From Trichoplax adhaerens (taxonomy: Eukaryota > Animalia > Placozoa), in contig NW_002060947.1 of assembly GCF_000150275.1 (NCBI RefSeq), forward strand, positions 2,345,740 to 2,409,739: a stretch of 64,000 nt of DNA, written 5' to 3'. Positions 14,211 to 64,000 of the stretch are shown piece by piece. How positions within the stretch are numbered: position 1 is the stretch's first letter; each line of letters opens with the position of its first letter. A program made the position numbers and the translations under genes. Below the pieces are notes generated by a model, which made no database searches, was not told the DNA's origin, and saw nothing but the letters and a program-made list of their open reading frames with translations.

Positions 14211-15681
14211 GGTGATTTATCGAAAATGCTTCAGTTAATTCTACCTTGCTAATGAATATAATAATACGAACAATAAACAATATGGATAATATGGTGATAA
14301 AAATTAAAGATGTTATCCGTAGCTCAGAATACTAAACAGTGAAGTAATAGGATTTTATTACAGTGAACCGTTCAATGAGAGCAGAAATAACTTTTGGGTT
14401 AAACTATACTGCTTTTGAAGGGCACTACAGTGCTTCCGGTTGTATACAGTAAGTGAACATCGTAAGTTAATACCATACCTTAGGACTTTATCCTATATAT
14501 CATATTATAACATTATAACTTGAAATAATGGCATATCGACGCGAAATCAGTTTTGTGGTTCTTGAATGTTGTTGGAGTTTCTGTGAGCACTACAGTTCCT
14601 GTATTCGCCAGATTTGCAAACAGGTACACCATACAGTACGGTACACTGCTTCATACAAACAGTGTACTGTAGAGTAAAGTACTGTACAGTACCGTACAGT
14701 ACTGTACTATGTACTGTGTTCACAATACATTGTACACTAATGCACAGTACTGTACAGTACTGCATCGTACTGTACTGTACACGCGTACAGTACCTGTGCA
14801 CTGTACAGTACACAAGTTTGGTACATGTACTGTACGGCAGTACTGTACAGACTGTACGGTATAATCACTGACAATCATTTTGCTTCAGTTCTATCAAACA
14901 CCACGAATTGAAACAGTACAGTACTGTACTGTATTCATTAGCAAAGCGTGCTGGTTATTATAGTCACTTGGTCCGCACCAGTCTGCCATGGACTGTGAAC
15001 AGGGCTCATTTTTCTAGCAAAACTGTGATTGTGACAGAAACAGCGAATCAAGCCTCGTTTTTACAGTACTGTACACTGAGTGTACTGTACAGTACTTATT
15101 TTGCTACATAGGCCAGTATTACGGAGTGAGTTGTAAAATGGTTAGACCGACCGCACATACTGTATAACAGCGATTGATAGTTTGTATTAGAAACTTTAAA
15201 GAAATATAATTATTCAATACTTCAATAAAAAGTAATAGAAATACCAAGAACCAATTACTCAATGTTGTAGTGATCTGTCTGCGTGAAATTTGAGCCAAAT
15301 TTAAAGTAAATTTCTTCAAAATTTAAAGATATGTCTAGCAACATCATAGCTGAATAATGAACATCTTTCAATCATTTTATAAGGCTTGCCACGCCCCTGT
15401 GATAAAGGTCTTGTGTGCGTGTGCAGTACAGTGTACAGTAGCCATTGCATGTTATGGTTTTACCGTACTGTACGGTACTGCATGACTTAAAGTGACAGCA
15501 CTATACTGTACTATGCACTACAGTACTACTCCAGCTGCAGATTAGATTTTACATTTACATTTTCTAGCGCCCTACGATGGTTTTATATTTATCTGGCACG
15601 TACGTATATGTTGCAAATATAATTATACATATATGATTCATTAAATTTTGACAGTGAGTCGGGTGGTGTTGTAAGTGCAGA
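14211..15681. promoter_or_regulatory. Divergent (head-to-head) promoter region shared by ITPR and UTP18
   Basis: Start codons point away from each other about 1.47 kb apart. Contains an ETS-type CTTCCGG (14433-14439), an ACTACAGTTCC resembling the ZNF143/THAP11 motif (14589-14599), a Sp/KLF box GCCACGCCCC (15388-15397) and dense CAGTA/TACTG repeats. Confidence 0.65.
14620..14940. repeat. Palindromic CAGTA/TACTG (GTAC-core) micro-repeat island
   Basis: For example actgtacagtaccgtacagtactgtactatgtactgtg and cagtactgtacagtac. Further copies at about 15060-15095 and 15420-15530. Confidence 0.85.
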
Positions 15682-49104: not shown

Positions 49105-49515
49105 CTTGCAACACTAAAGATATTGAAAGCACAGTTACGTTTATTACATCTAAGCCTTTACTTCCTTATAGGTCAGTCATGATGGAGGTAGTAAAGGGAA
49201 CTTACGGTTATTATTTTTAATGTAGCTCCATAATCGGAATAGCAAAGATGTAAATACTACAATACTATGTATTAAATAGATCTTTACTATTAAATTAATA
49301 CTAATCTATCTTCTCAGAAGCAAACACGCAAAATTATGTTTCGATACTACAGAATCAGGCAAAATAAGATTCTTCAGATGGAAAACATATATTAAAAGCG
49401 GCTAAGAATACAAATTCTAGCAAGTAATAATTAGTCTTCTCCTTGTAAAGAATTCAGCAAATAAAAAATCATCATCTACGGTAATTTATACGACTGCGAA
49501 TTGTAATTCGCTCGC

Positions 49516-49529
49516 GTTACCGTGGCAAC
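49516..49529. promoter_or_regulatory. RFX-binding X-box upstream of DNAH12
   Basis: GTTACCGTGGCAAC matches the X-box consensus GTTNCCNNRGYAAC and lies about 410 nt upstream of the ATG of a ciliary gene. Confidence 0.8.
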
Positions 49530-49544
49530 ACTAACATACTTTAA

Positions 49545-49742
49545 AGTACTGTACCAGTGTACCTATTAACAATCACATACTGTACAGTACAGTGTACAGT
49601 ACAGTACTCGATTTTGCAATCCTCTTTGTACTGTATTGTACTGTACACAGTATGAGCGTGCAGTTTTCAGTACACTGCGGCATACAGTACAGTACTGTAC
49701 TGTAGACCACCAGAAAAAATACCTACGTACTGTACTGTACGA
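49545..49742. repeat. Palindromic CAGTA/TACTG micro-repeat island upstream of DNAH12
   Basis: tactgtacagtacagtgtacagtacagtac, cagtacagtactgtactgtag and similar runs. Confidence 0.85.
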
Positions 49743-50071
49743 CAGAAATTTTCTTGGGCGGACAGACATTTGGCCTACTTTGGTAAATTGTGTCCTACAC
49801 TTTATTATGGCAGTGGTTCAGTACGTTGTTAGTCGATTCTGAATGGGCTGAGTTTTTCTAAATTAAGTAAGGTTCCATTTCCTGTTACTAAGTTCTGATT
49901 AGAAGCAGTAAATTTAGATCATGAATGTAACTTAAATTAATACGAGTGATTTAGAAAACAGACACAGAAGATCAATACTGAGTAACTGTTTTTCGATATT
50001 TTCGACCTACTCTGGTATGGCAGTCTGTCCGTCCGAGGAGAGTTTTAGGTCCAGGTATTTTTTCTAGTAGT
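49706..50071. mobile_element. MITE-like element bounded by degenerate ~50-60 bp inverted repeats
   Basis: Left arm 49706-49767 is accaccagaaaaaatacct...agaaattttcttgggcggacagac. The reverse complement of the right arm 50023-50071 is actactagaaaaaatacct...aaaactctcctcggacggacagac. No coding capacity and no target-site duplication identified. Confidence 0.5.
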
Positions 50072-51999: not shown

Positions 52000-54900
52000 T
52001 CATTATAAAACTGAACATATAAACACTAATTAATGTAAGTAGAGAAAATTGTATATTATATAGTTGTAGAAAACAAATAGTTCGCATATGAAATTTATTG
52101 TTTACTAATCAAAGACTTACAGTAAATCTAGATTTAAATAATGTAAAATAACAATAAAAAAATCTAATGCAAAAAAACAAGAAAAACCAAAGTGATTACG
52201 AGAACAAATCTGCGCGTCAAATACTATAACTTAAAATAATAACTTGCGAATTTTATTATAGACAGTTAATGAAAAAAACATTTCGAACAGAAAATCGATA
52301 CAGAAATAAAGATTGTTAATAATTTCAAGAAATTCCTATCAATCCTCAAAAAATTCTTTGACCTATATTTGAACTCAACTAAGAAATGTATGAAAATGAT
52401 GAATAAAAAAATTACAAAAATTATACGATAAAAATCATGCAAGATAAAAAAAGCTAATGTAAAGTAGTTTAGAGAACTTTCAATGTCTAAAAACTACAAA
52501 TTCCAAGAAATAAACAGTAATATAAACTGTTTAAAACCTGTAATTAGAATACCTAAAATACTAAAAAAAATTTTACAAAAGAGCTTTAGAACGAGTAAAC
52601 TGAATAAAATATAAAATTCTAAAAAATAATTCTGGCAGATAGCAAAAAGAAAAACTTTAATAACACTATAAATATTAAAAATGAAAACCTGAAGCATGGC
52701 TTCAACAAACTAAAAAAAAGTTGCACATTAAAGTTTGTCAGTGTATTTAATATTTAAACCGAAAAGCAAACGATTATGAAGTAACTAAACGACAAAAGTT
52801 CTTGAAATTAATAATTAGTATAATAAAATAGTCTTATAAAAAATGGAAAAAGCGTTCTGGCTTTTACATAAGAATGTCGATAAGAAATCAAAACGTATAC
52901 AAAGTTTTCCGATCGATACTATAAAACCTGGCTGTAAAAGACATAAAAATTTCTTTCGCGTGGAAACATTTAAATATTAAAAAATCGATTTCGTCTATCG
53001 ATTTATTAACAATGAAATAATTATATATAATGTCCCTTTACTAAAAAAAAGGTAACGCAACTTTTAATTTATATAAATTATAGATTCAAGCGAATAACCA
53101 TAATTAACAATTTTAAAAAGTAATTCTTCAAGCCTCAGGAAAAATTAGTTGAAAATAAATATAATTTAATTCTCAATCGCCTGTATTACGCTGAAATTAA
53201 ATCTAAAATAGTAAAATTTATGCGTATTTCTCGAAAGAAAACCGTATAAAAACTAAAATATTCTCTCCAAAAAACATTCTTTAAGATATTATCCGTTATG
53301 TAAAAAAACATGTAAAATTTAAAACATTTTTAAAAGTAAAAAGGTAATTCCATGAAATATATTTATAACACAAGATAATTGAAATAAAAATTTTGTCTTT
53401 AGATTAAATAAATACAGTAGCAAATTAACTCTTGACGCATCTTAAAATATTGAAAATTTTGAACAAAGGAAGAAAAGAAGCTTTTTTGTTATAAAAATAA
53501 ACTGGTCAATACACAAAAATTTTCATTGGTATCTACCAATGAAAGTATACAAATTTTTGTGTATAAATTGTAAAATGGAAATTCTAAACAAATATAATTT
53601 AGAAAAAAAATACAGGATACAGTACAGCAAAATTAAGCCTAATGTTGAAAAGATTTTACACTATGAGTACAGTTCACATCGTAAACTAAATAAAATATCT
53701 AAGATAGTAGTATTTCATTGCAAAATACCTAGACCGTTTAAGGAAGTTCTTCGTTGAAATATTCTAGCTATGAAAATTATACAGTAAGCAGCATATGTAA
53801 GCAGGTTTAGTAAGAACTATTCATTTATTCATAAAAAAATGTATTTTGAGAACGGCTACAGAACGATTTTGATTAGCTAAAACTTAAAGCAATAAGTTTA
53901 GTTTTTCGATTTCAAAGTATCAAATATAATAATAGCCTGTTTTAGATCTACAAATATATCATATCAATTCTATGTAGCCGGCTAAACTTACATGCAAGTA
54001 CTACCATACATTTCCTTCTTAGATTATGTACACTAACGTGCTACGAAAAAAGTAAACTTCCGTAGAAAACTAAACAGAAATTAAAACTTCGACCTCTGTC
54101 AAAAAAGTTTACACTACCTTAGATGACATACTTTACAGATCTAGTGTAATGAATTCATACCTTAAACATATAATCAATAAAGGTTAAAAAATCAATTATC
54201 AAAATAAATTTTTTGAGTTTATGACTGATCAAATTATTTCCTATTTACTCGTTATGAATTGAATTAACTTAAGTACACAAGTGCCTAAATTTCCTATTCA
54301 AAATTAGTTTTTCATTACTGATGAATAAACGAGGTACCTTAATTAAAATCTACTATTAAAATCTAATAAAAAAATTTAACTATTTAAATTAGAAAGAAAT
54401 ATTACTTCGAAAGATTTCAGGGGTGCATAATTTAATCTCCCTAAAAAAAGAAAAACCCTTCTTTATTTAGTAGAGGTTGTCACTTAAGAAGAAGTATTTA
54501 CATTTAATTCGAAGTTTTAGAAATAATTAAAATAGCAAAAATTTACTTTAATAGCTATAAATATAAGCATCTAAAAAATCATAAAATGTGATTCTTGAAT
54601 TACACAAATTTTGGAAACTAATTTTTAAGTGATCGCATTTACTAAACCTCTAAATACTGGGTCCGTAAATGTTTAATATATAAAATATGAAAAGAAAATT
54701 TACTGAAAATTTAATACGTTAGCTATACGTAATCATAAAGTCATGTTTATATACTTTAAAGAAATATATAATCTCATAATAATAATGACTATAAATAGTA
54801 GATATGTTCCTATACTAATTTAAAAAAATGTTGTATAAATTGAATGATGAGTAAGAGAATGTTTACTTTAATAGAGGTAAATGTAAATTAGAAAAAAAAA

Positions 54901-56720
54901 TTTTAAAATGACAACTTACACTTAAACGATTAGGTTTAGACCAATAAATTAATTTTAAAACAACTCGAGCTGTAAAAAGTAGATAGGAGGTACGGGTAAG
55001 TACATGTTAGGGCTAAAACTCGAAATAAGAATATATTANNNNNNNNNNNNNNNNNNNNNNNNNNNNNNNNNNNNNNNNNNNNNNNNNNTAGTTCTTTCAA
55101 ATATGCAATAAAATTAAACACCTCGATAGAGATATCTGATGACTAGATATGATAGAAGATTGTACTTGAAAAAAAATTGTGTCACCGTCTTAAGTTAGAA
55201 ATTCGAAAGATTTTACTCTATGGGCTTCAGGCGGATTAATATCATGCATAATAAAAGAATTGGATTTAAGCAGTTACGTATATTACATATATATATATAT
55301 GTATTTACGATAGTATCTCAGCTAATGTTAGGGTTAAGTTAGGGTTATATGTAAAAAATGAGTAACCAAAATATTTAACTTTCGACATTAACTTTACAAA
55401 TTTACAAAAGACCACGCGTGTCGTTCAAAATAAAAAGTTAAAAAATACGTGCGTTACTTCCAAATTCAGAAACGAATCTTTAGCTGGAATTCCCTGCTGT
55501 CAATAGATTTAGCCTGTAAAAACTATCGTAGCATATTTAAGAAGTTTTACCGTATATTACTAAGAATGGTAGCATATGAAAGAAAATTTCTTAAAAAAAC
55601 ACTCCCCTGTTTTTAAAAAGGCTCTGAACGTATGAAAAGAAACAATTAAATATAATCATATTTATGTACGGGCCCGAAATTTAAACATTGCAATGTCATA
55701 AATACGTGACGGTACGCCGATGAACAATGATCACATAGCGGAAAATACTGTTAAGAATCTGATTAAAGATAAAACCATCACAAGTGAAATCAATTGACAG
55801 ATTATGTATTGTACATATATATCTTCTATACCTAAAATTTACTAGTACAATGAAACTATATAAATTAAAAAGTTTTTGACTATGACGAAAAAAATTATAA
55901 TTAAAATATTGTTCACTTATTCTAATATACTACAGTAATCAGTTGTAATTTTTACTATACTATTAATAAATACCATTTTCATATAGTACCGTACAGAAAA
56001 TGAAAAGCCATCCTAGTTCTGTACGTATATTTAGAAAAAATACGTTGATATATCTGAAAAATATTATCAAATTTTATAAATAGGAATAGCTATGAGTATG
56101 AAAAAATAAACAAAGAAACTAACTAAATTATTAGGTTAGACGAGAATAATATTCTTGAAATAGCCATCGAAAGATTATTAATAATTGTACACTGCTACAA
56201 TTATATCTGATTAACCGAATAATTTATTGGGTTAAGGCAGTTATAGTCACTGTACACAAAAATGCTTTGAAATGCATGGTCTTAATTCAGATTTAAAAAT
56301 ACCAAGAAATTCAACAATTGACGCAAAAAGGATAGAGTAGAATCTCAGCTACAGTATACTATAATTATTAGTGCTAATTCATCAATACATATAACCGTAA
56401 TTCTAAATTAATACGTCTACGATTTAAAGCCTCGCTCATAAAACTTAGATTATTTCTGTATGGCAGTAATCGTTTCAATATATAGTCATACTGTACAAAT
56501 AGCAGAACAAATGCTAATACGGAATTCGCCTCCATAATAATTAATTGCCTGGAGCTTGCTTTAGAAATTTAGTAAATATTTGTTGTACAGTAAATTATAA
56601 GCTATAAAAGTATGCAAAATCTCAGAACAGAGATAAACTATAGAAATATTTGAAATATTTTCTAAAAATAACCCTGCAACGATAATTGTGCTATAAAATT
56701 CCTACATTCGACACAATATT
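52000..56720 (+). pseudogene. Heavily decayed, A-rich coding relic, possibly NACHT/LRR-type
   Basis: Strong A-over-T skew and low GC, unlike neighbouring introns. Fragments broken by stops and frameshifts: MEKAFW (52843), YSFIHK (53818-53835, resembling the NACHT winged-helix FxH motif) and LDENNILEIAIERL (56136-56177, LRR-like). Confidence 0.3.
55039..55088. other. Assembly gap (50 N)
   Basis: Run of n characters. Confidence 1.
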
Positions 56721-56809
56721 CTAGTCATAATTATAACGTTGCTTTTTCATCTCTAGATAGGTGTTAACTTAAATATTTTGATAAAAGGCAGCAATGCAAT
56801 ATGATATGC

Positions 56810-57144
56810 TCATGATGGTAAATTCTTTCCCAAGGAGCGAGCAAAATGTTGAGTCACAAGATCTTCTTGGCTTTCTGTGGTACGATTGCCTGTCAAGCTG
56901 CGAGCAAAGTGTTCCTCTACCATGTTATCAACATTGACTTCCTTAGAAGATTTTTCACAAGTTTTGTTCTCTCCAGATCTAATTCAGATAAATTACAAAA
57001 TTACTTCGCATTTCCCATCTTAATAGAGATGTACGAAATTTGTAAAACATTTATAAATAATCAATTCAAACCCGTAAATTTGAACTTCTTCACGCGCTGG
57101 AAGCTCATCACGGCGTCTTTCATGGTTCTCGCTGCTTACCTCAC
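56810..57144 (-). CDS. VGLL4: Vestigial-like 4 / Tgi-type TEAD(Scalloped) cofactor, last two coding exons; 5' exons unresolved
   Basis: Exon 57144-57072 (ttttttag acceptor, gtttga donor) splices in frame to exon 56978-56810. Together they read EVSSENHERRRDELPAREEVQIYGSGENKTCEKSSKEVNVDNMVEEHFARSLTGNRTTESQEDLVTQHFARSLGKNLPS*. This has two tandem Tondu (TDU) motifs, compared with human VGLL4 VEEHFRRSLGKNY and VDDHFAKALG. Confidence 0.85.
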
Positions 57145-58997
57145 CTAAAAAAAACTTTTCTATTAATCTGGAAGTTGAGTGGAACCACATACAATGAAAC
57201 ATTAATTTTTATTATTTCTTTTTAACTATCTATGTCTAAATTTATGAAGGCTTAAAGCAGTAAAGTGGGTAATTTAACCATAAACAGAAAAAGTGATGTC
57301 TACATAATAAAGCTCTGAAATACGAAAAGTAAAATAATTTCTAGGTAAAAATGTAAGCAAGCAATCACTTGCAATGTTACGAAATAATTCTAACTAAAAT
57401 TCCCATATACTCTCTCAATGCACTAGGATTTTAAATAAGTAAACAACTTTCATGAGGCGTAGTTACATTTATCCCTTAACCTAGCAGTTTTTGGCGCAGA
57501 TGTATGTTAGTAGCTGTCTTAAAATACTCCTTCTAAATACCAAAACGGGATTCGAATGTTGACTGGTCTATTTCGGCCTTGAATCAGTTATCACGTCGTA
57601 CGTGTCCTAAAACAGTGATTCATTCTTAAATTTATCAGGTGGTGTACTATGAGTCGATTTAAAAGGTTGCTTAATTTTCTACGATGTTTTTGCTTGTCGA
57701 GTGTCTGTCTAAACGTAAAATTGATCGCCTTTCTAATATTAGTCTATTACAACCTGCATTTTTGTATATCAAAGTAAAATTGTTTATAGGCCCTTAAACG
57801 TTTTTGTTGTACAGTATACATAAATCAAAAAGTCGTGACATGACAGTAAAAATATTTATAAGGTCTCACAATCTTTTGTTCTTGATAGTAGTAAGTAAAA
57901 TTTAGGAGCTTAGATATTATTATGTCCTGGATTTTGTTCTTATTTATATAATTTCGTTAATTGTTAGAACTATTTATTTATAATCAAGTGTACCCAAGCG
58001 TATTTAAATACGCCCGTTGAAGATGTCATGTGCACCCATTGCTCGTACTGTACTTGCGTACCTAACTGATTTTTTTACTTTATGTACCCTCATATTAATC
58101 TAGTCGATGTATATTGGTATCATGACTAATAAGAATTTCTTGGCTAGATTTACGATAATCAGTATAATTATAAGGATAACTAAATCTAGGCAACAGTTAC
58201 TATTGTAATGTAAGCATAGGATACTGTATGAAGCGTGCGTGAAATGAATGCTGCTATGTTAGTGTGGAAGTTTATACTAAAACCTATTTAAGAAATTTCT
58301 ATATTTTTACTGAATTGTTATTAAAACAACTTAAAAAGAGTTTATGTAACTTAAATTCTAAAATCTACAACGAAGCCTGCGGATCTTATCGTGTATAAAA
58401 CGAGGAAGAAAGTCTCGCTCGCACATCTAGTTCATATTTAAAATTTGCCGACGTCACTAATTTTTATACAAATCCTGTTAAATCGCGGCTTTTCTGATGA
58501 TGCATATTATATTTCTGATGAATATTATCAAAGCTGATGTTGATAAAAGAAAACATTTTTGATATTATCTTTATATCATAAACTCTACAAAGTTCCTCAC
58601 AATTTATCGTGATGCATAAAGAGTTGTCGAGTTATAAGACGGTGAATTATTAATTAAATTAAATTAATTTAAATTAATTAATGTATTATATATACAGTAT
58701 AAAGTAATATAATTTAATCAATTAGAGTACAGCATGTACAGTAGTGTACATTCACTTTTGGTAATTAAGAAGATTGTGATAAGTGGAACTTGAAATAAAT
58801 TTAATTCTATTTTCATATATTGCTTTCATTTAATCTTGACAGGCAGACAGTAAATTCTTACGGTTGGTTAACAATACGATTATTGTTATATCTATATATA
58901 TAGTGATACTAAATGATACGGTAGTAACTTGCGTGCGCAATAATAGCGATATATAGTGTCGAGTGCCGTTCTTTTTCGAAACTGGATAATTTGCCGC

Positions 58998-59165
58998 ATT
59001 AAATTAAAATTATGCAGTCTGGAATTGTACGCTGTAAAATATTCAATCCACTCTAATAATATCAAAAGTAGACACTGCTTCATTAGATTAATTTTATGCT
59101 GTATAGGATCGAACTCCGCAAAGTATTCAATTCACCCTCGTAACATCAAACTTATACTAATCGAT
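58998..59165 (+). repeat. Degenerate 84-nt (28-codon) tandem duplication encoding RI-type LRR-like units
   Basis: attaaattaaaattatgc...aaatattcaatccactctaataatatcaaa versus attagattaattttatgc...aagtattcaattcaccctcgtaacatcaaa, offset 84 nt. They translate as IKLKLCSLELYAVKYSIHSNNIKS and IRLILCCIGSNSAKYSIHPRNIKL. Confidence 0.6.
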
Positions 59166-60822
59166 ATTGTTTTCACCTTTACAGGTTCTGATTGTGTTTC
59201 ACCAAAAAACCTAATTTCAGATACTTACAATTAAAGTATAACGTTATTTGAATCATTACAAAATAACTAATTAGTTAGATAGTAGAAGTGGTCTGTACTT
59301 ATCGAACTGTTGCTAAAACGGAAATTGATGTTAAAGTCTAAAATTTAGAACAAAAGAAAGACGAAATCAAATCTTTAATTTTGCTAATATACCAAAATGA
59401 ACTGCCTACAAACCGATAAAATATGGCTGACGTAATCGATCCTAGACTCTACCTGATTAGTGAAGCGGTAGCACTCTTTACAAACAGCTACGTCGCAGTA
59501 GCACAACATATACGCAATTATATTGGGCATTTAGGGTAGGGATGACGATTCAGGGTATTTCGAATAGAGATCCTTATCACAGAACCTAACTCTCTTAAAT
59601 ACCAATATTTGTACAAGTAACTAAGCAAACTTATTTGCAAAACTTTCTTTACTTGAGGTAGATGCAAATAGATTAATGTAAACTATTCTTCACCTCTTAG
59701 TTCAGGCATTTCATCTACGATTATATTTTTTGTCAAGCTTTGTAAGTTATTTCTGGTATAGTAAACGCGACCATGAATACGTGCGAAACCTGAACATAAA
59801 TAGTATTTCCATTCATGTTAAAAAATTCAACTCGAACGCTATAAAGTTTCAGACTTGCACCCAACTGAACCTTTCTTAAGTCTAATTCTGAGAACGCTAA
59901 GTACCAGTGCCCTAAGTATTGTAAAGAAAGATAATGTACCAAGCAAGCTACTGAATTCCATCTGCATGTATATTGATTCCTATTTGAAGCTCAACACGAA
60001 TAGGTTATTAACTTTTTGATCTATTTACGAGAAATGAATTTTTATGCAAATCGTACGAAATTAATCTCCCGACAGATTCAGTTTAATTAAATCGCTCTCA
60101 TCTTTGTCTTTAATTCGTCATTGTATAAGCATTCCAAGATGCTTGTACGTAAATAAAACTGAAATAGCTTTCTCTACAGACTCTTTATAGGAGATAGTAG
60201 AGAACTATGACGACTGGTATAATGATAGGTACAGAATGATAGCCGTATTAGTTGCAGAAATCATACGTTTCTGTTCTGTAAGTGGTGTGAAAGTGTGGCA
60301 CCCAGTGATAGCGGCATTAATGCATGATGAATAGTGCAAGAACGGTCACTGTTTAGTAATCACGTCGCAGCCGTTGAAATAATTCAAATCGAGGGTAACG
60401 ATGTGTTAGTAAGCGAATTATCACGTGTGTTTATTACGTGTTTTTATTCTAACAGTACAATGTAACGCGCAAATTAAGAGACAGTAGTAGCAAATACATC
60501 AGTAGAGATTGCCAACAATGAAATAGCTGCATGTAGTAGAATTATTGTAGCGCTCGACACTATATAGGTTGAAAATTTTCATGAATTAATATGTACAGTA
60601 CTGTAAAGGTTAACCTCATCTATGTAGTAATATAGCATGTAATTATTATTCACTGTCAATATAAGGTACATATGAATGTAGTAAATGAATAATCTGATCA
60701 ACTATATTTACATATATAATTATTAGATTTTTATCTATAACATTATATACTGAACATAATATACCGGATTACTGTGCTGTTCGCAATATCTGCCTTCATT
60801 GTCTATTGTAATTGCAACAGCT

Positions 60823-61561
60823 ATGACGAACATGTGTCAAAGCGAACAGTATATTCTTTTACAGCTTCGTGTTCGTAATTAATTGCATACCATCCTAATG
60901 TCTGCTAAATGCAGCATAACAATAAAATTTTCAGACGTACTAACGATGCTACTGAAAGCATCTCAGGCTTGACCCTTAGGTAGACTGAACGCTATATTAT
61001 CAATAAGAACAGATGAGGCATTACTCTACATGCAAGTATATTACCTAAACTGATTATGAGAGACATTACAATAACTTAACCTGTAGATTGTAAACTAAGC
61101 TAAATTAAAATAATTAAATTTAGTATTAACAGGAACATTTTACCTACTCGTAGAAGCGGAATAAATCGCATTGTAGACTGTATTGACGTCAAGAACAATA
61201 CTTTGCTAGTTAAAGCCCATAGTCGTATACTGAACCCAGTCATATTCAGTAAATGTTACGAAATTACGATAAATATCAAGAAAATTATGGTAAAGAATCG
61301 GCGTTATATAACCGTCATCTGGGCATAAAGGGTTAAGTGTAATACAACAGTATACGTACAGTGCAATAATTGCAGAATATTAATGAAAGAAATAAAACTG
61401 CTGAAAGCGAAATAGAACCAATGCGTAGTACACATACTGTAGTAGATCAAAATCCACTCTCGAGGTTGATGTGCCTAGCATTTGGCTGTCCCGGAATATT
61501 ATACTTCGTATTCGCATTTGCAAAGTATTACGTGTCAATGTTACAGTTCTACAAACAGTAA
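60823..61561 (+). CDS. Possible small orphan gene with a C-terminal hydrophobic segment
   Basis: Frame-compatible exons 60823-60848, 60935-60979, 61133-61289 and 61376-61561 with GT-AG boundaries. Ends LMCLAFGCPGILYFVFAFAKYYVSMLQFYKQ*. No recognised family. Confidence 0.25.
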
Positions 61562-63339
61562 TTGATAATCAAGCCTAAATAAAGACTTAAATACAGTACA
61601 CGTACAAAAAAATTAGCGGATTCCCAAATTCGGTAGTAAGATTGCGACGTAAATATGACTGCTTGGAAATTGTTAACTGTAAATTAATCAACTGAGCTTA
61701 ATTTATCAATTTTTAGAATTAGAGGAGATAAAATATGATAAACTAATACCTTCCGACGGCATAAACACTTAAGATATGGAACACAATCGGGGATTACTAG
61801 AGGATGCAGCATTCTCTGGTACTACTGTACTGTACTACATAAATGTAGAACACACGCGTAAATTCTGTTAATGCACCATTAGCATGTAATTTCCGTATGT
61901 TCAAAACACAACTTAAGCTTCGGCTATCAATGCTACTGTATGTGTTTGGATCTTTTCTGTACTGTATACAGCTTTGGTGGGAATAAACTAATGTAATTCC
62001 TATGGCAAAAATTTGATATCTATGCTCATTTACCAAAATTATTAATTGTAAGTAACTATTACAATTAGTAACGACTGTTTCGCATAACTAGATCTGTAAA
62101 GGTTCTAGATCCTTCAAGACGTTCTGAAGCAAGAACCTTTCGGGATTTCGATTTTTCACTGGGAACTGGTTCTTGTTCGATTCAGCACAGCTTAATCTGC
62201 GTTCCACGTTACAGTATAGTACCGTACACGATAGACTCGATAAGTCTAAAGTACAATATCATAGTAGAGAGAAAAAAATTCAATGGTGAATCCGATACAG
62301 CAAATCGTAAATCTTGTATCTCATGTTGACGAGGGCTACCTAGTAATGACATTGATCTGTCAAAGCAACCTGCCAAATTGTATATTATGCGTATGCTAGC
62401 CAATCTAAACCTGCATAGTGATGGATGTGGAAATTTCTATACGTACAGTAAGTATAGAGTTTAGCAGTTTAGAGGTTGAGATTTTTTTATTAAAGTTCTT
62501 TCACACTTTTAAAGTGATGAAGACTATCTACACTGTACGCTGATTCCGGAAGTATGCATAGTTTTTTCTCTCCCACTCTCCGTTTGGCCGTGATGGTATT
62601 ACAAAAAAATCGTCTTTTACTTTATGCACACACAGTAGATTATTATTATTATTAAGACTCATTGGCAGCGTCAAAAGCGCCTAACAATGATTAAACTCTT
62701 TATTGAGCAATAAGATACAACCCCCAAGATCTTTTAACCTCATTAGCAGTTCGCGGATCAATTTCATAAAGTGTTTAATATCGTCCTCTATAAAAGACTC
62801 CGATGGTTCGTATCTAATTCCCGGCGTACCGCATAGTTCACCCATCTATTAGATTTAGATTCGGGCAAGAGCTAAGTTGCGAACAGATACATTGGAATGC
62901 AACGTGCAAATCAATATCCAGCATTCTACAATACTCTACTGTACAATACGCGTATGTGCCATTCGCTAAAGTTATTTACAACTTTACCTTCACTGTGTAG
63001 GAATTCCAAAACAAGATAAAATTTGAAAAGAAATTCCATAATATTATTATTACAGTGCTGTGAATCATATCCAATTTGTATACCTTTAGAACGATACATA
63101 ATAGAGCGCATTGAAGACCGTAGTATATCACTACTGCAGTCATTAACTCTTCCAATCAAATGCATGAAATTTAAAGGACCAAGTTCATCGAGCAACATCA
63201 TGCAGAAATTTACATTTAATAATTAACCATCGTCAACTTACAATTTTGGGCCATCACTAAATGCGCTGCGTAAGACAGCAATTCAAGGGATGATTTCTCT
63301 TTATTATCCATGCCTCAATAATTATAATAATTTAACTTC

Positions 63340-64000
63340 TGACGAGCATACAGTATACAGTAGTACAGTATAAATATGCACTATACAGTATATATATGTA
63401 TGTTGTATAATAGTACTGTACAGTATCTCAGTGGTTTTGCAAATTGAGATTCGACTACGTCATATATTATTGCATAAACGCTTCTTTTACAAGTTATTAA
63501 ATGATCATCTAGTATCTTCCTCGTTCTCCTTGTGCAGAAAAAGAAAGAAAGAAATATGTACAATTCTACAGTAACTTTACTTTATTACTAAACCCCAAAT
63601 CAGCTAAAAGTGTACTGTACAGTATCAAACTCGGTACTGATCTGGCGTAGAGTATTGTACTGTGGCCGTGTACTGTACTGTATTGTACTGTACTGTGAGT
63701 CTAACTGTGACCATACAGTACGAGAATAGCAAAAGTTGTTTCACATTGTGAGAGGGGTAAGCAATGATTCAAACAACTTTTGCTATTCTCGTATGGTCGA
63801 CTGCACACTATTAGAATAATGTATCATCGTTTAAGCTATTTACGCTGAGTATCTGAGTAATCGGGATTATTATGGCTGGGGCCTACTGCACACTGTGCAC
63901 AGTGTACAGTACAGTACTGTACTACAGTATACTGTACATGTACTGTGCAGTACACTACAGTCCAAAGAGGAAAAAGAACCTCTACAGTACAGTACAGTAC
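63340..64000. repeat. Palindromic CAGTA/TACTG micro-repeat island (probably near a promoter)
   Basis: tactgtactgtattgtactgtactgtg, agtgtacagtacagtactgtactacagtatactgtac, cagtacagtacagtac. Confidence 0.85.
63709..63798. repeat. Perfect 23-bp inverted repeat / long hairpin
   Basis: tacgagaatagcaaaagttgttt (63719-63741) is the exact reverse complement of aaacaacttttgctattctcgta (63771-63793). The 29-nt spacer has extra cattg/caatg pairing, and outer gacca/tggtc also pair. Confidence 0.9.

Follow-up and report, generated by a model that had tools for sequence, protein, structure and literature searches.

The stretch of DNA analysed here (the window; 64,000 nucleotides of Trichoplax adhaerens, C1410:2345740-2409739 of a 105.6-Mb assembly of 1414 contigs) carries on its minus strand a three-exon gene that runs from position 63311 to about 56205, with a predicted product of about 103 residues and two Tondu (TDU) motifs in the terminal exon (Table 1). 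DNA, protein and profile searches of the genome found no paralog, second copy or retrocopy of exon 3, which is single-copy, and Rfam gave no match over 55500-64000, an interval that covers intron 1. As the preliminary description had pointed out, the open reading frame track is blind to this gene, the frames of at least 60 aa being one of 100 aa in antisense and one of 60 aa that holds exon 2. The sole match of the antisense frame (56846-57148, plus strand) was Herpes_UL31 at chance level (E 0.06; 12.7 bits against a cut-off of 25), and a plus-strand reading of the locus was rejected because the intron ends read GT..AG on the minus strand only.

Table 1. Features of the minus-strand Tondu gene, in window positions.
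Feature	Position	Strand	Length and basis
Probable 5' untranslated part of exon 1	63312..63543	-	putative extent; rest of contig assumed colinear
Exon 1, coding part	63242..63311	-	70 nt; loose contig end behind 57144 in X1 and X12 matches
Intron 1	57145..63241	-	6097 nt, GT..AG; donor, acceptor AG 57146-57145 and contig continuation from 57144 to 63242
Exon 2	57072..57144	-	73 nt; contig pieces end exactly at both limits in 4/4 runs
Intron 2	56979..57071	-	93 nt, GT..AG; contig joint in X9, X11, X12 and X1
Exon 3, coding part	56810..56978	-	55 codons and TGA; both Tondu motifs; translation, Pfam matches
Tondu motif 1, VEEHFARSL	56894..56920	-	translation; aligns to TDU1 of 4ln0_C and the VGLL1 TDU of 5z2q
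Tondu motif 2, VTQHFARSLG	56828..56857	-	translation; collinear alignment to VGLL4 TDU2
3' untranslated region	56205..56809	-	about 605 nt; AATAAA at 56228-56223

Exon 1, read from its first ATG (63311-63309), gives 23 codons and the first base of a Cys codon (T|GT) that spans the junction with exon 2; an in-frame stop lies two codons upstream of this ATG, a second in-frame ATG at 63254-63252 would yield a product of 84 aa, and the donor GTAAGT starts at 63241. Exon 2 encodes an acidic/basic stretch with ENHERRRDELPAR, two of its bases completing a codon at the start and two opening a codon at the end. It joins exon 3 in frame (TAC GG|A, Gly), as had been proposed from the letters of the stretch, and the donor GT after 57072 and the acceptor AG at 56980-56979 are both in place; the TGA stop occupies 56812-56810. 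On the 3' side the spliced contigs end at 56204, 56206 and 56248, and the AATAAA sits 17-19 nt upstream of contig ends.

Part of the interval 56400-60400 is contained in 20 public runs, and the contigs of four of them, three with RNA on record (X9, X11 and X12) and the one with the best coverage (X1), were compared with positions 56100-62099; these four runs span no fewer than two studies and two organism labels. Contigs of all four join 56978 to 57072, skipping 93 nt that read CT..AC on the plus strand, i.e. GT..AG on the minus strand, so that the spliced junction on which the preliminary description had made its gene depend is present in each. The contigs of X1 and X12 continue past 57144 with letters that match nowhere in the 6-kb stretch, and 30 of these letters equal 63242-63271 of the minus strand exactly, the sole such place in the window, which puts exon 1 some 6.1 kb upstream of exon 2. 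The X12 contig (record 18, 366 nt) has 64 nt on exon 2 and so 302 nt upstream of the junction, of which the first 30 were compared with the window and matched at 30/30. The ATG exons that had been suggested for the N-terminus (58040-58013 and 58426-58369) were not borne out, as they have no contig joint and the contigs join 57144 to 63242 instead. This splice evidence consists of assembled contigs, which speak only indirectly to strand, level and transcript ends; contigs of the same runs also cover the introns, at lower depth, a sign that these runs contain either pre-mRNA or DNA. Canonical spliced introns, together with the purifying selection on the ORF described below, mark the locus as an expressed protein-coding gene.

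The runs also differ from the window at a number of positions. At 56892 all four have T where the window has G (plus strand), which changes ACA to AAA on the coding strand and Thr to Lys just after TDU1; the residue there is Thr in the sister-strain protein described below, as in the window, and Arg-Lys stands at this place in the distant ortholog. This may reflect a shared allele, a base specific to the reference or a non-canonical RNA-DNA difference. Positions 56694 and 56699 and a 1-nt deletion at 57188 likewise differ from the window in 4/4 runs, which favours a reference-specific haplotype. An unspliced X12 contig over intron 1 (57081-58337) differs at 36 of 1247 positions, with 12 gaps besides, and has G>A on the coding strand at 57111, turning an Arg of exon 2 into His, whereas the X12 contig spliced to exon 1 apparently does not carry this variant, judging from depth figures. 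The X12 sample seems to contain two haplotypes or strains that have diverged.

The nearest database protein, RDD46781.1 of Trichoplax sp. H2 (P0001; hypothetical protein TrispH2_001143, 90 aa), is identical to the window gene over exons 2 and 3 (79 residues, exon 2 being its residues 12-34) and is the product of the same gene in a sister strain; it is unnamed, and no Pfam domain is recorded for it. A predicted exon at 57571-57541 of the window supplies the first 11 residues of P0001, whereas the window gene uses the exon 6.1 kb upstream. In the window genome the H2 exon starts with ATA and has no contig joint to exon 2, and it was rejected as a first exon. In runs labelled organism B, T>C at 57569 turns this ATA (57569-57571) into ATG, the start codon of the H2 model. 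Despite the ATG at 57571, the organism-B runs also splice exon 2 to the far exon, and the contig-supported first exon corrects the public H2 gene model. Neither the word-index protein search nor a phmmer search of 1.84 billion proteins returned a protein of the window's own genome for this gene, and the word-index search, with phmmer, gave no relatives beyond the H2 protein and one Logan ORF. As regards prior annotation, which the preliminary description had raised, there is thus a hypothetical protein in H2 with a differing first exon and none was found for the window's own genome.

Both TDUs lie in the same exon and within the last 37 residues of the protein, their starts 21 residues apart, and are followed by KNLPS and the stop; the motifs, their spacing and all coordinates given for them earlier were confirmed. 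Chance expectation was estimated from the six-frame amino-acid frequencies of the window. By chance, the 105.6-Mb genome should contain the loose core [VIL]xxHFx[RK][SA]L about 119 times, a pair of such cores at most 40 residues apart in one frame 0.002 times and the exact motif pair about 1e-8 times; within the 64-kb window these two are the only loose cores. The Ser codons of the two HFARSL copies are AGC and TCC here and AGC and TCA in the distantly related contig L010, i.e. they belong to different codon families with the same split in both, so any duplication is old and the identity has been held by selection. The preliminary description had taken the shared HFARSL as a sign of an ancestral internal duplication; an old origin agrees with the codons, whereas the identity cannot serve as evidence of a recent copy (Ser AGC against TCC).

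By its sequence the gene is of the VGLL4/Tgi type, having two tandem short TDUs with a His-Phe core, and the same assignment in the preliminary description is now backed by splicing in RNA runs, Pfam, PDB and atlas matches and conservation of the motifs in a distant relative. The exons were searched separately, with P0001 standing in for exons 2 and 3. The terminal exon matched Pfam Vg_Tdu (PF07545; 26.0 bits, E 8.5e-6) and VGLL4 (PF15245; 25.8 bits, E 1.3e-5), in two stretches each, so the profiles proposed earlier as a check gave E values near 1e-5 and scores about 1 bit under both curated cut-offs (27 bits). The VGLL4 match covers positions 188-213 of 217 only, and this profile gave 24.1 bits for P0001 and 17.9 bits for the Logan ORF (P0002); since PF15245 is dominated by a long region that is absent here, a score below the threshold is expected even for a true short member. 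On Vg_Tdu the ortholog exon P0002 reached 29.5 bits, above the 27-bit cut-off. In a PDB search with the single exon the best match was the VGLL4 chain 4ln0_C (E 0.013). A two-sequence profile matched at E < 10 four PDB chains from three entries, all of them TEAD-bound Tondu peptides: 4ln0_C at E 4e-4 with both TDUs collinear, two VGLL1 chains of 5z2q at E about 0.006 and, weakly, Vestigial 6y20. The three nearest neighbours by features in the protein atlas were VGLL4 clusters (0.90, 0.87 and 0.86). The atlas model of P0001 is disordered (pLDDT 0.43), as one would predict for TDU peptides, which take up their fold on TEAD.

Searching 1.84 billion representatives with phmmer at E <= 0.001 returned the H2 protein and P0002 and no bilaterian VGLL4, as would be expected for two 10-residue motifs, so what ties the protein to bilaterian VGLL4 is a pair of 9-10-residue motifs, together with the order and position in which they occur. 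Outside the motifs Pfam and phmmer detected no similarity to VGLL4 or any VGLL. A PPxY motif is absent from the exon translations and from P0001, as is any known repressor-recruiting region, and the exon 1 peptide has no Pfam match and no usable atlas match. Profile, protein and DNA searches detected no Tondu gene in the genome other than this one. A genome scan with PF15245 gave zero candidates and missed exon 3 itself, and is therefore insensitive here; two Vg_Tdu candidates (on C592 and C1398) proved to be noise, their translations being without a TDU and one of them containing a stop.

The Logan ORF P0002 (54 aa) is a placozoan-like exon with 61-64% identity to the terminal exon and is located on two AT-rich contigs, L010 (4.3 kb) and L011 (3.8 kb). 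A comparison of L010 with all 64 kb of the window aligned nothing but the coding part of the terminal exon (73% DNA identity over 124 nt by blastn; a single tblastx match) and the flanks were unalignable. Of the last 50 codons, 15 are unchanged, 17 carry synonymous differences only and 18 encode another residue. In the conserved blocks MVEEHFARSL and EDLVTQHFARSLG (about 22 residues) E is replaced by D and Q by K, both conservatively, and nothing else differs; the 21-residue register is preserved, as is the ending LPS-stop. In L010 a candidate exon of 76 nt precedes the terminal exon; its entry and exit phases are those of exon 2, its start is conservatively similar (DANTDNHDK against EVSSENHER) and a 148-nt intron follows it. 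The exon-only conservation and the pattern of synonymous and non-synonymous changes are signs of purifying selection on the ORF.

Vertebrate VGLL4 (4LN0, chain C) has the same order of two short cores, V-x-x-H-F-x-[RK]-[SA]-L, and the placozoan TDU2 (LVTQHFARSLGKNL) is close to TDU1 of VGLL4 (VVEEHFRRSLGKNY). The placozoan motifs stand at the very C-terminus. Differences from VGLL4 are that almost no tail follows TDU2 and that the linker of 12 residues between the motifs is 7 residues shorter than in mouse VGLL4. Vertebrate VGLL4 is 286-290 aa long, compared with about 103 aa for the placozoan protein, whose match to the VGLL4 Pfam profile is limited to the last 28 of 217 positions. The gene plan is alike, the first coding exon being short and the first intron long in the placozoan gene as in VGLL4, and the first exons of vertebrate VGLL4 encode about 22 residues and arise from alternative promoters (PMC12922143). 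Drosophila Tgi is a two-TDU cofactor of a single TEAD (Scalloped) that antagonizes Yorkie (PMC12922143), and the likeness here extends to the two TDUs and to a host with one TEAD locus (and, in the present case, one YAP). The placozoan protein, being without PPxY, differs from Tgi in this respect. Tgi itself is several times longer than 103 aa, and its PPxY motifs contact Yorkie. The core of TDU1, MV[DE]EHF[AS]R[SA]L, aligns with its upstream residues to VGLL1 (E 0.006) and weakly to Vg; Vestigial and VGLL1-3 (5Z2Q, 6Y20) have a single TDU of about 24 residues (PMC12922143), in contrast to the two short TDUs of the placozoan protein.

The peptide of exon 1, SLELLSYAAHLVMA (63243-63311), may resemble the N-terminus of one vertebrate VGLL4 isoform. 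A text search found no paper containing this vertebrate N-terminal motif. If the resemblance holds, it would be a further argument for the first ATG as the start, and if SLELLSYAAHLVMA is truly homologous then both ends of VGLL4, as well as the gene plan in which a short first exon stands before a long first intron, would predate the placozoan-bilaterian split.

The genome encodes one TEAD locus, which holds both the TEA domain and the YAP-binding domain (C1412:6774945-6784529, with the YAP-binding domain at 6783765-6784529), and one YAP. One exon of the YAP-binding domain gave E 2e-17 against mammalian TEAD4, the two agreeing at most of the 47 residues aligned, and in this exon the groove-forming segment of TEAD is nearly unchanged. 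The stretch C1414:7771392-7771496 encodes, with 100% identity, the TEAD-binding peptide (residues 15-49) published for T. adhaerens YAP; this peptide binds human TEAD with an IC50 of 880 nM, and Vestigial-like proteins and YAP bind the same region of TEAD (PMC7784741). The two TDUs of VGLL4 bind TEAD4 at a ratio of 1:2 and modulate the recruitment of YAP (PMC13247214), and altering the EEHF core abolishes TEAD binding (PMC12922143). By analogy with the solved VGLL4-TEAD4, VGLL1-TEAD4 and Vg-Sd complexes, each V-x-x-H-F-x-R-S-L core of the placozoan protein would fold into a short helix upon binding, and its His-Phe pair would insert into the helix-binding groove of the TEAD YAP-binding domain, a surface that the LxxLF helix of YAP also uses. 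The two motifs could thus occupy TEAD molecules or bridge them, in competition with YAP for the animal's single TEAD, and YAP-driven transcription would be lowered. Both His-Phe pairs are kept and the TEAD groove is conserved, so that the most likely function would be occupancy of TEAD in competition with YAP; the competition is suggested by the overlap of the binding sites in the known structures. We infer that the protein is translated from the first ATG, binds TEAD, competes with YAP and acts as a repressor. Overall, we consider it likely that the locus is a real, single-copy, three-exon protein-coding gene of the minus strand, of the VGLL4/Tgi type, whose product would occupy TEAD in competition with YAP.

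The protein may instead be a Tondu partner of TEAD that works as a co-activator or TEAD-clustering factor, in the manner of Vg/VGLL1-3 or of VGLL4 at low dose, instead of antagonizing YAP or repressing. Together with the residues upstream of it (VNVDNMVEEHFARSL), TDU1 aligns to the VGLL1 TDU of 5z2q (E 0.006) no less well than to VGLL4, the searches of the genome found no second, Vg-type TDU gene, so one protein may cover both roles, and a protein of 103 aa without a recognizable repressor region could fit such a part; furthermore, the tandem TDUs of VGLL4 promote multimerization of TEAD4 and enhance YAP recruitment at a low VGLL4:TEAD4 ratio (PMC13247214). However, two short C-terminal tandem motifs are the defining arrangement of VGLL4/Tgi (PMC12922143), the best PDB and atlas matches are to VGLL4, and the overlap of the TDU and YAP surfaces on TEAD leads one to expect some competition whatever the net output, so we regard a co-activator as quite unlikely. 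It is far less probable that the transcript is real and its ORF untranslated or non-functional, whether as a long non-coding RNA or as a decaying gene in which the motifs are a relic or coincidence. The shortness of the ORF (103 aa), the apparent lack of a model in the H1 protein set (the H2 protein and the Logan ORF being all that was found) and the disordered atlas model (pLDDT 0.43) would fit this, but a tandem pair is expected 0.002 times per genome, only the coding exon can be aligned between the diverged relatives, with 17 synonymous-only codons and no non-conservative change in the motifs, the exon phases are kept in L010, and TDU peptides, since they fold on TEAD, should be disordered on their own. 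Least credible of all is a convergent likeness in which the HFARSL motifs bind a partner other than TEAD, since, despite the lack of similarity to any VGLL protein beyond the motifs, all four PDB profile matches are TEAD-bound Tondu peptides and the groove-forming segment of TEAD is nearly unchanged in the genome.

With a VGLL4/Tgi-type competitor of YAP as the preferred reading, the nuclear end of the Hippo pathway would be complete in a placozoan, TEAD, YAP and the putative competitor all being encoded. The two 10-residue TDUs of VGLL4/Tgi are described as conserved from sponges to mammals in PMC12922143 (citing Simon et al., 2016), so their presence in an early-branching animal is to be expected; the gene is not new in kind for such animals and leaves the picture of the age of the family unchanged. 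None of the papers covered by our literature search names a Trichoplax VGLL4 gene. What is added here is the identification of an unnamed gene, its transcript-supported first exon and the small size of the protein. At about 103 residues it comes near to the smallest natural two-TDU unit, which would make it a convenient reagent for asking whether YAP-VGLL4 antagonism predates the bilaterians and how linker length relates to 1:1 or 1:2 binding. We also entertain, as a tentative and rather unlikely proposal, that the protein is a natural minimal VGLL4, a two-TDU clamp of about 100 residues with hardly anything besides a short N-terminal exon, and the only Tondu protein of the animal, covering roles that are split between Vg/VGLL1-3 and VGLL4/Tgi in bilaterians.

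The sequence around the gene has features of its own. Islands of the words CAGTAC, GTACTG and TACTGTA occur at 63340-64000, 14501-15500 and 49501-50000 (31-53 matches, against a mean of about 2 per 500 nt), and within the first of these, directly upstream of exon 1, ATACAGT is present six times at 63348-63392. In intron 1, contigs of several runs share short pieces at 59116-59149, 59588 and 60222 with unlike sequence on both sides, and these are probably dispersed repeats common to other loci; a 92-aa ORF on the plus strand (58956-59234) has an internal sequence repeat. Just downstream of the gene, 52000-56000 is very AT-rich (GC 0.24-0.25, against about 0.34 elsewhere) and includes an assembly gap, where the ORF at 54936-55121 shows consecutive X residues.
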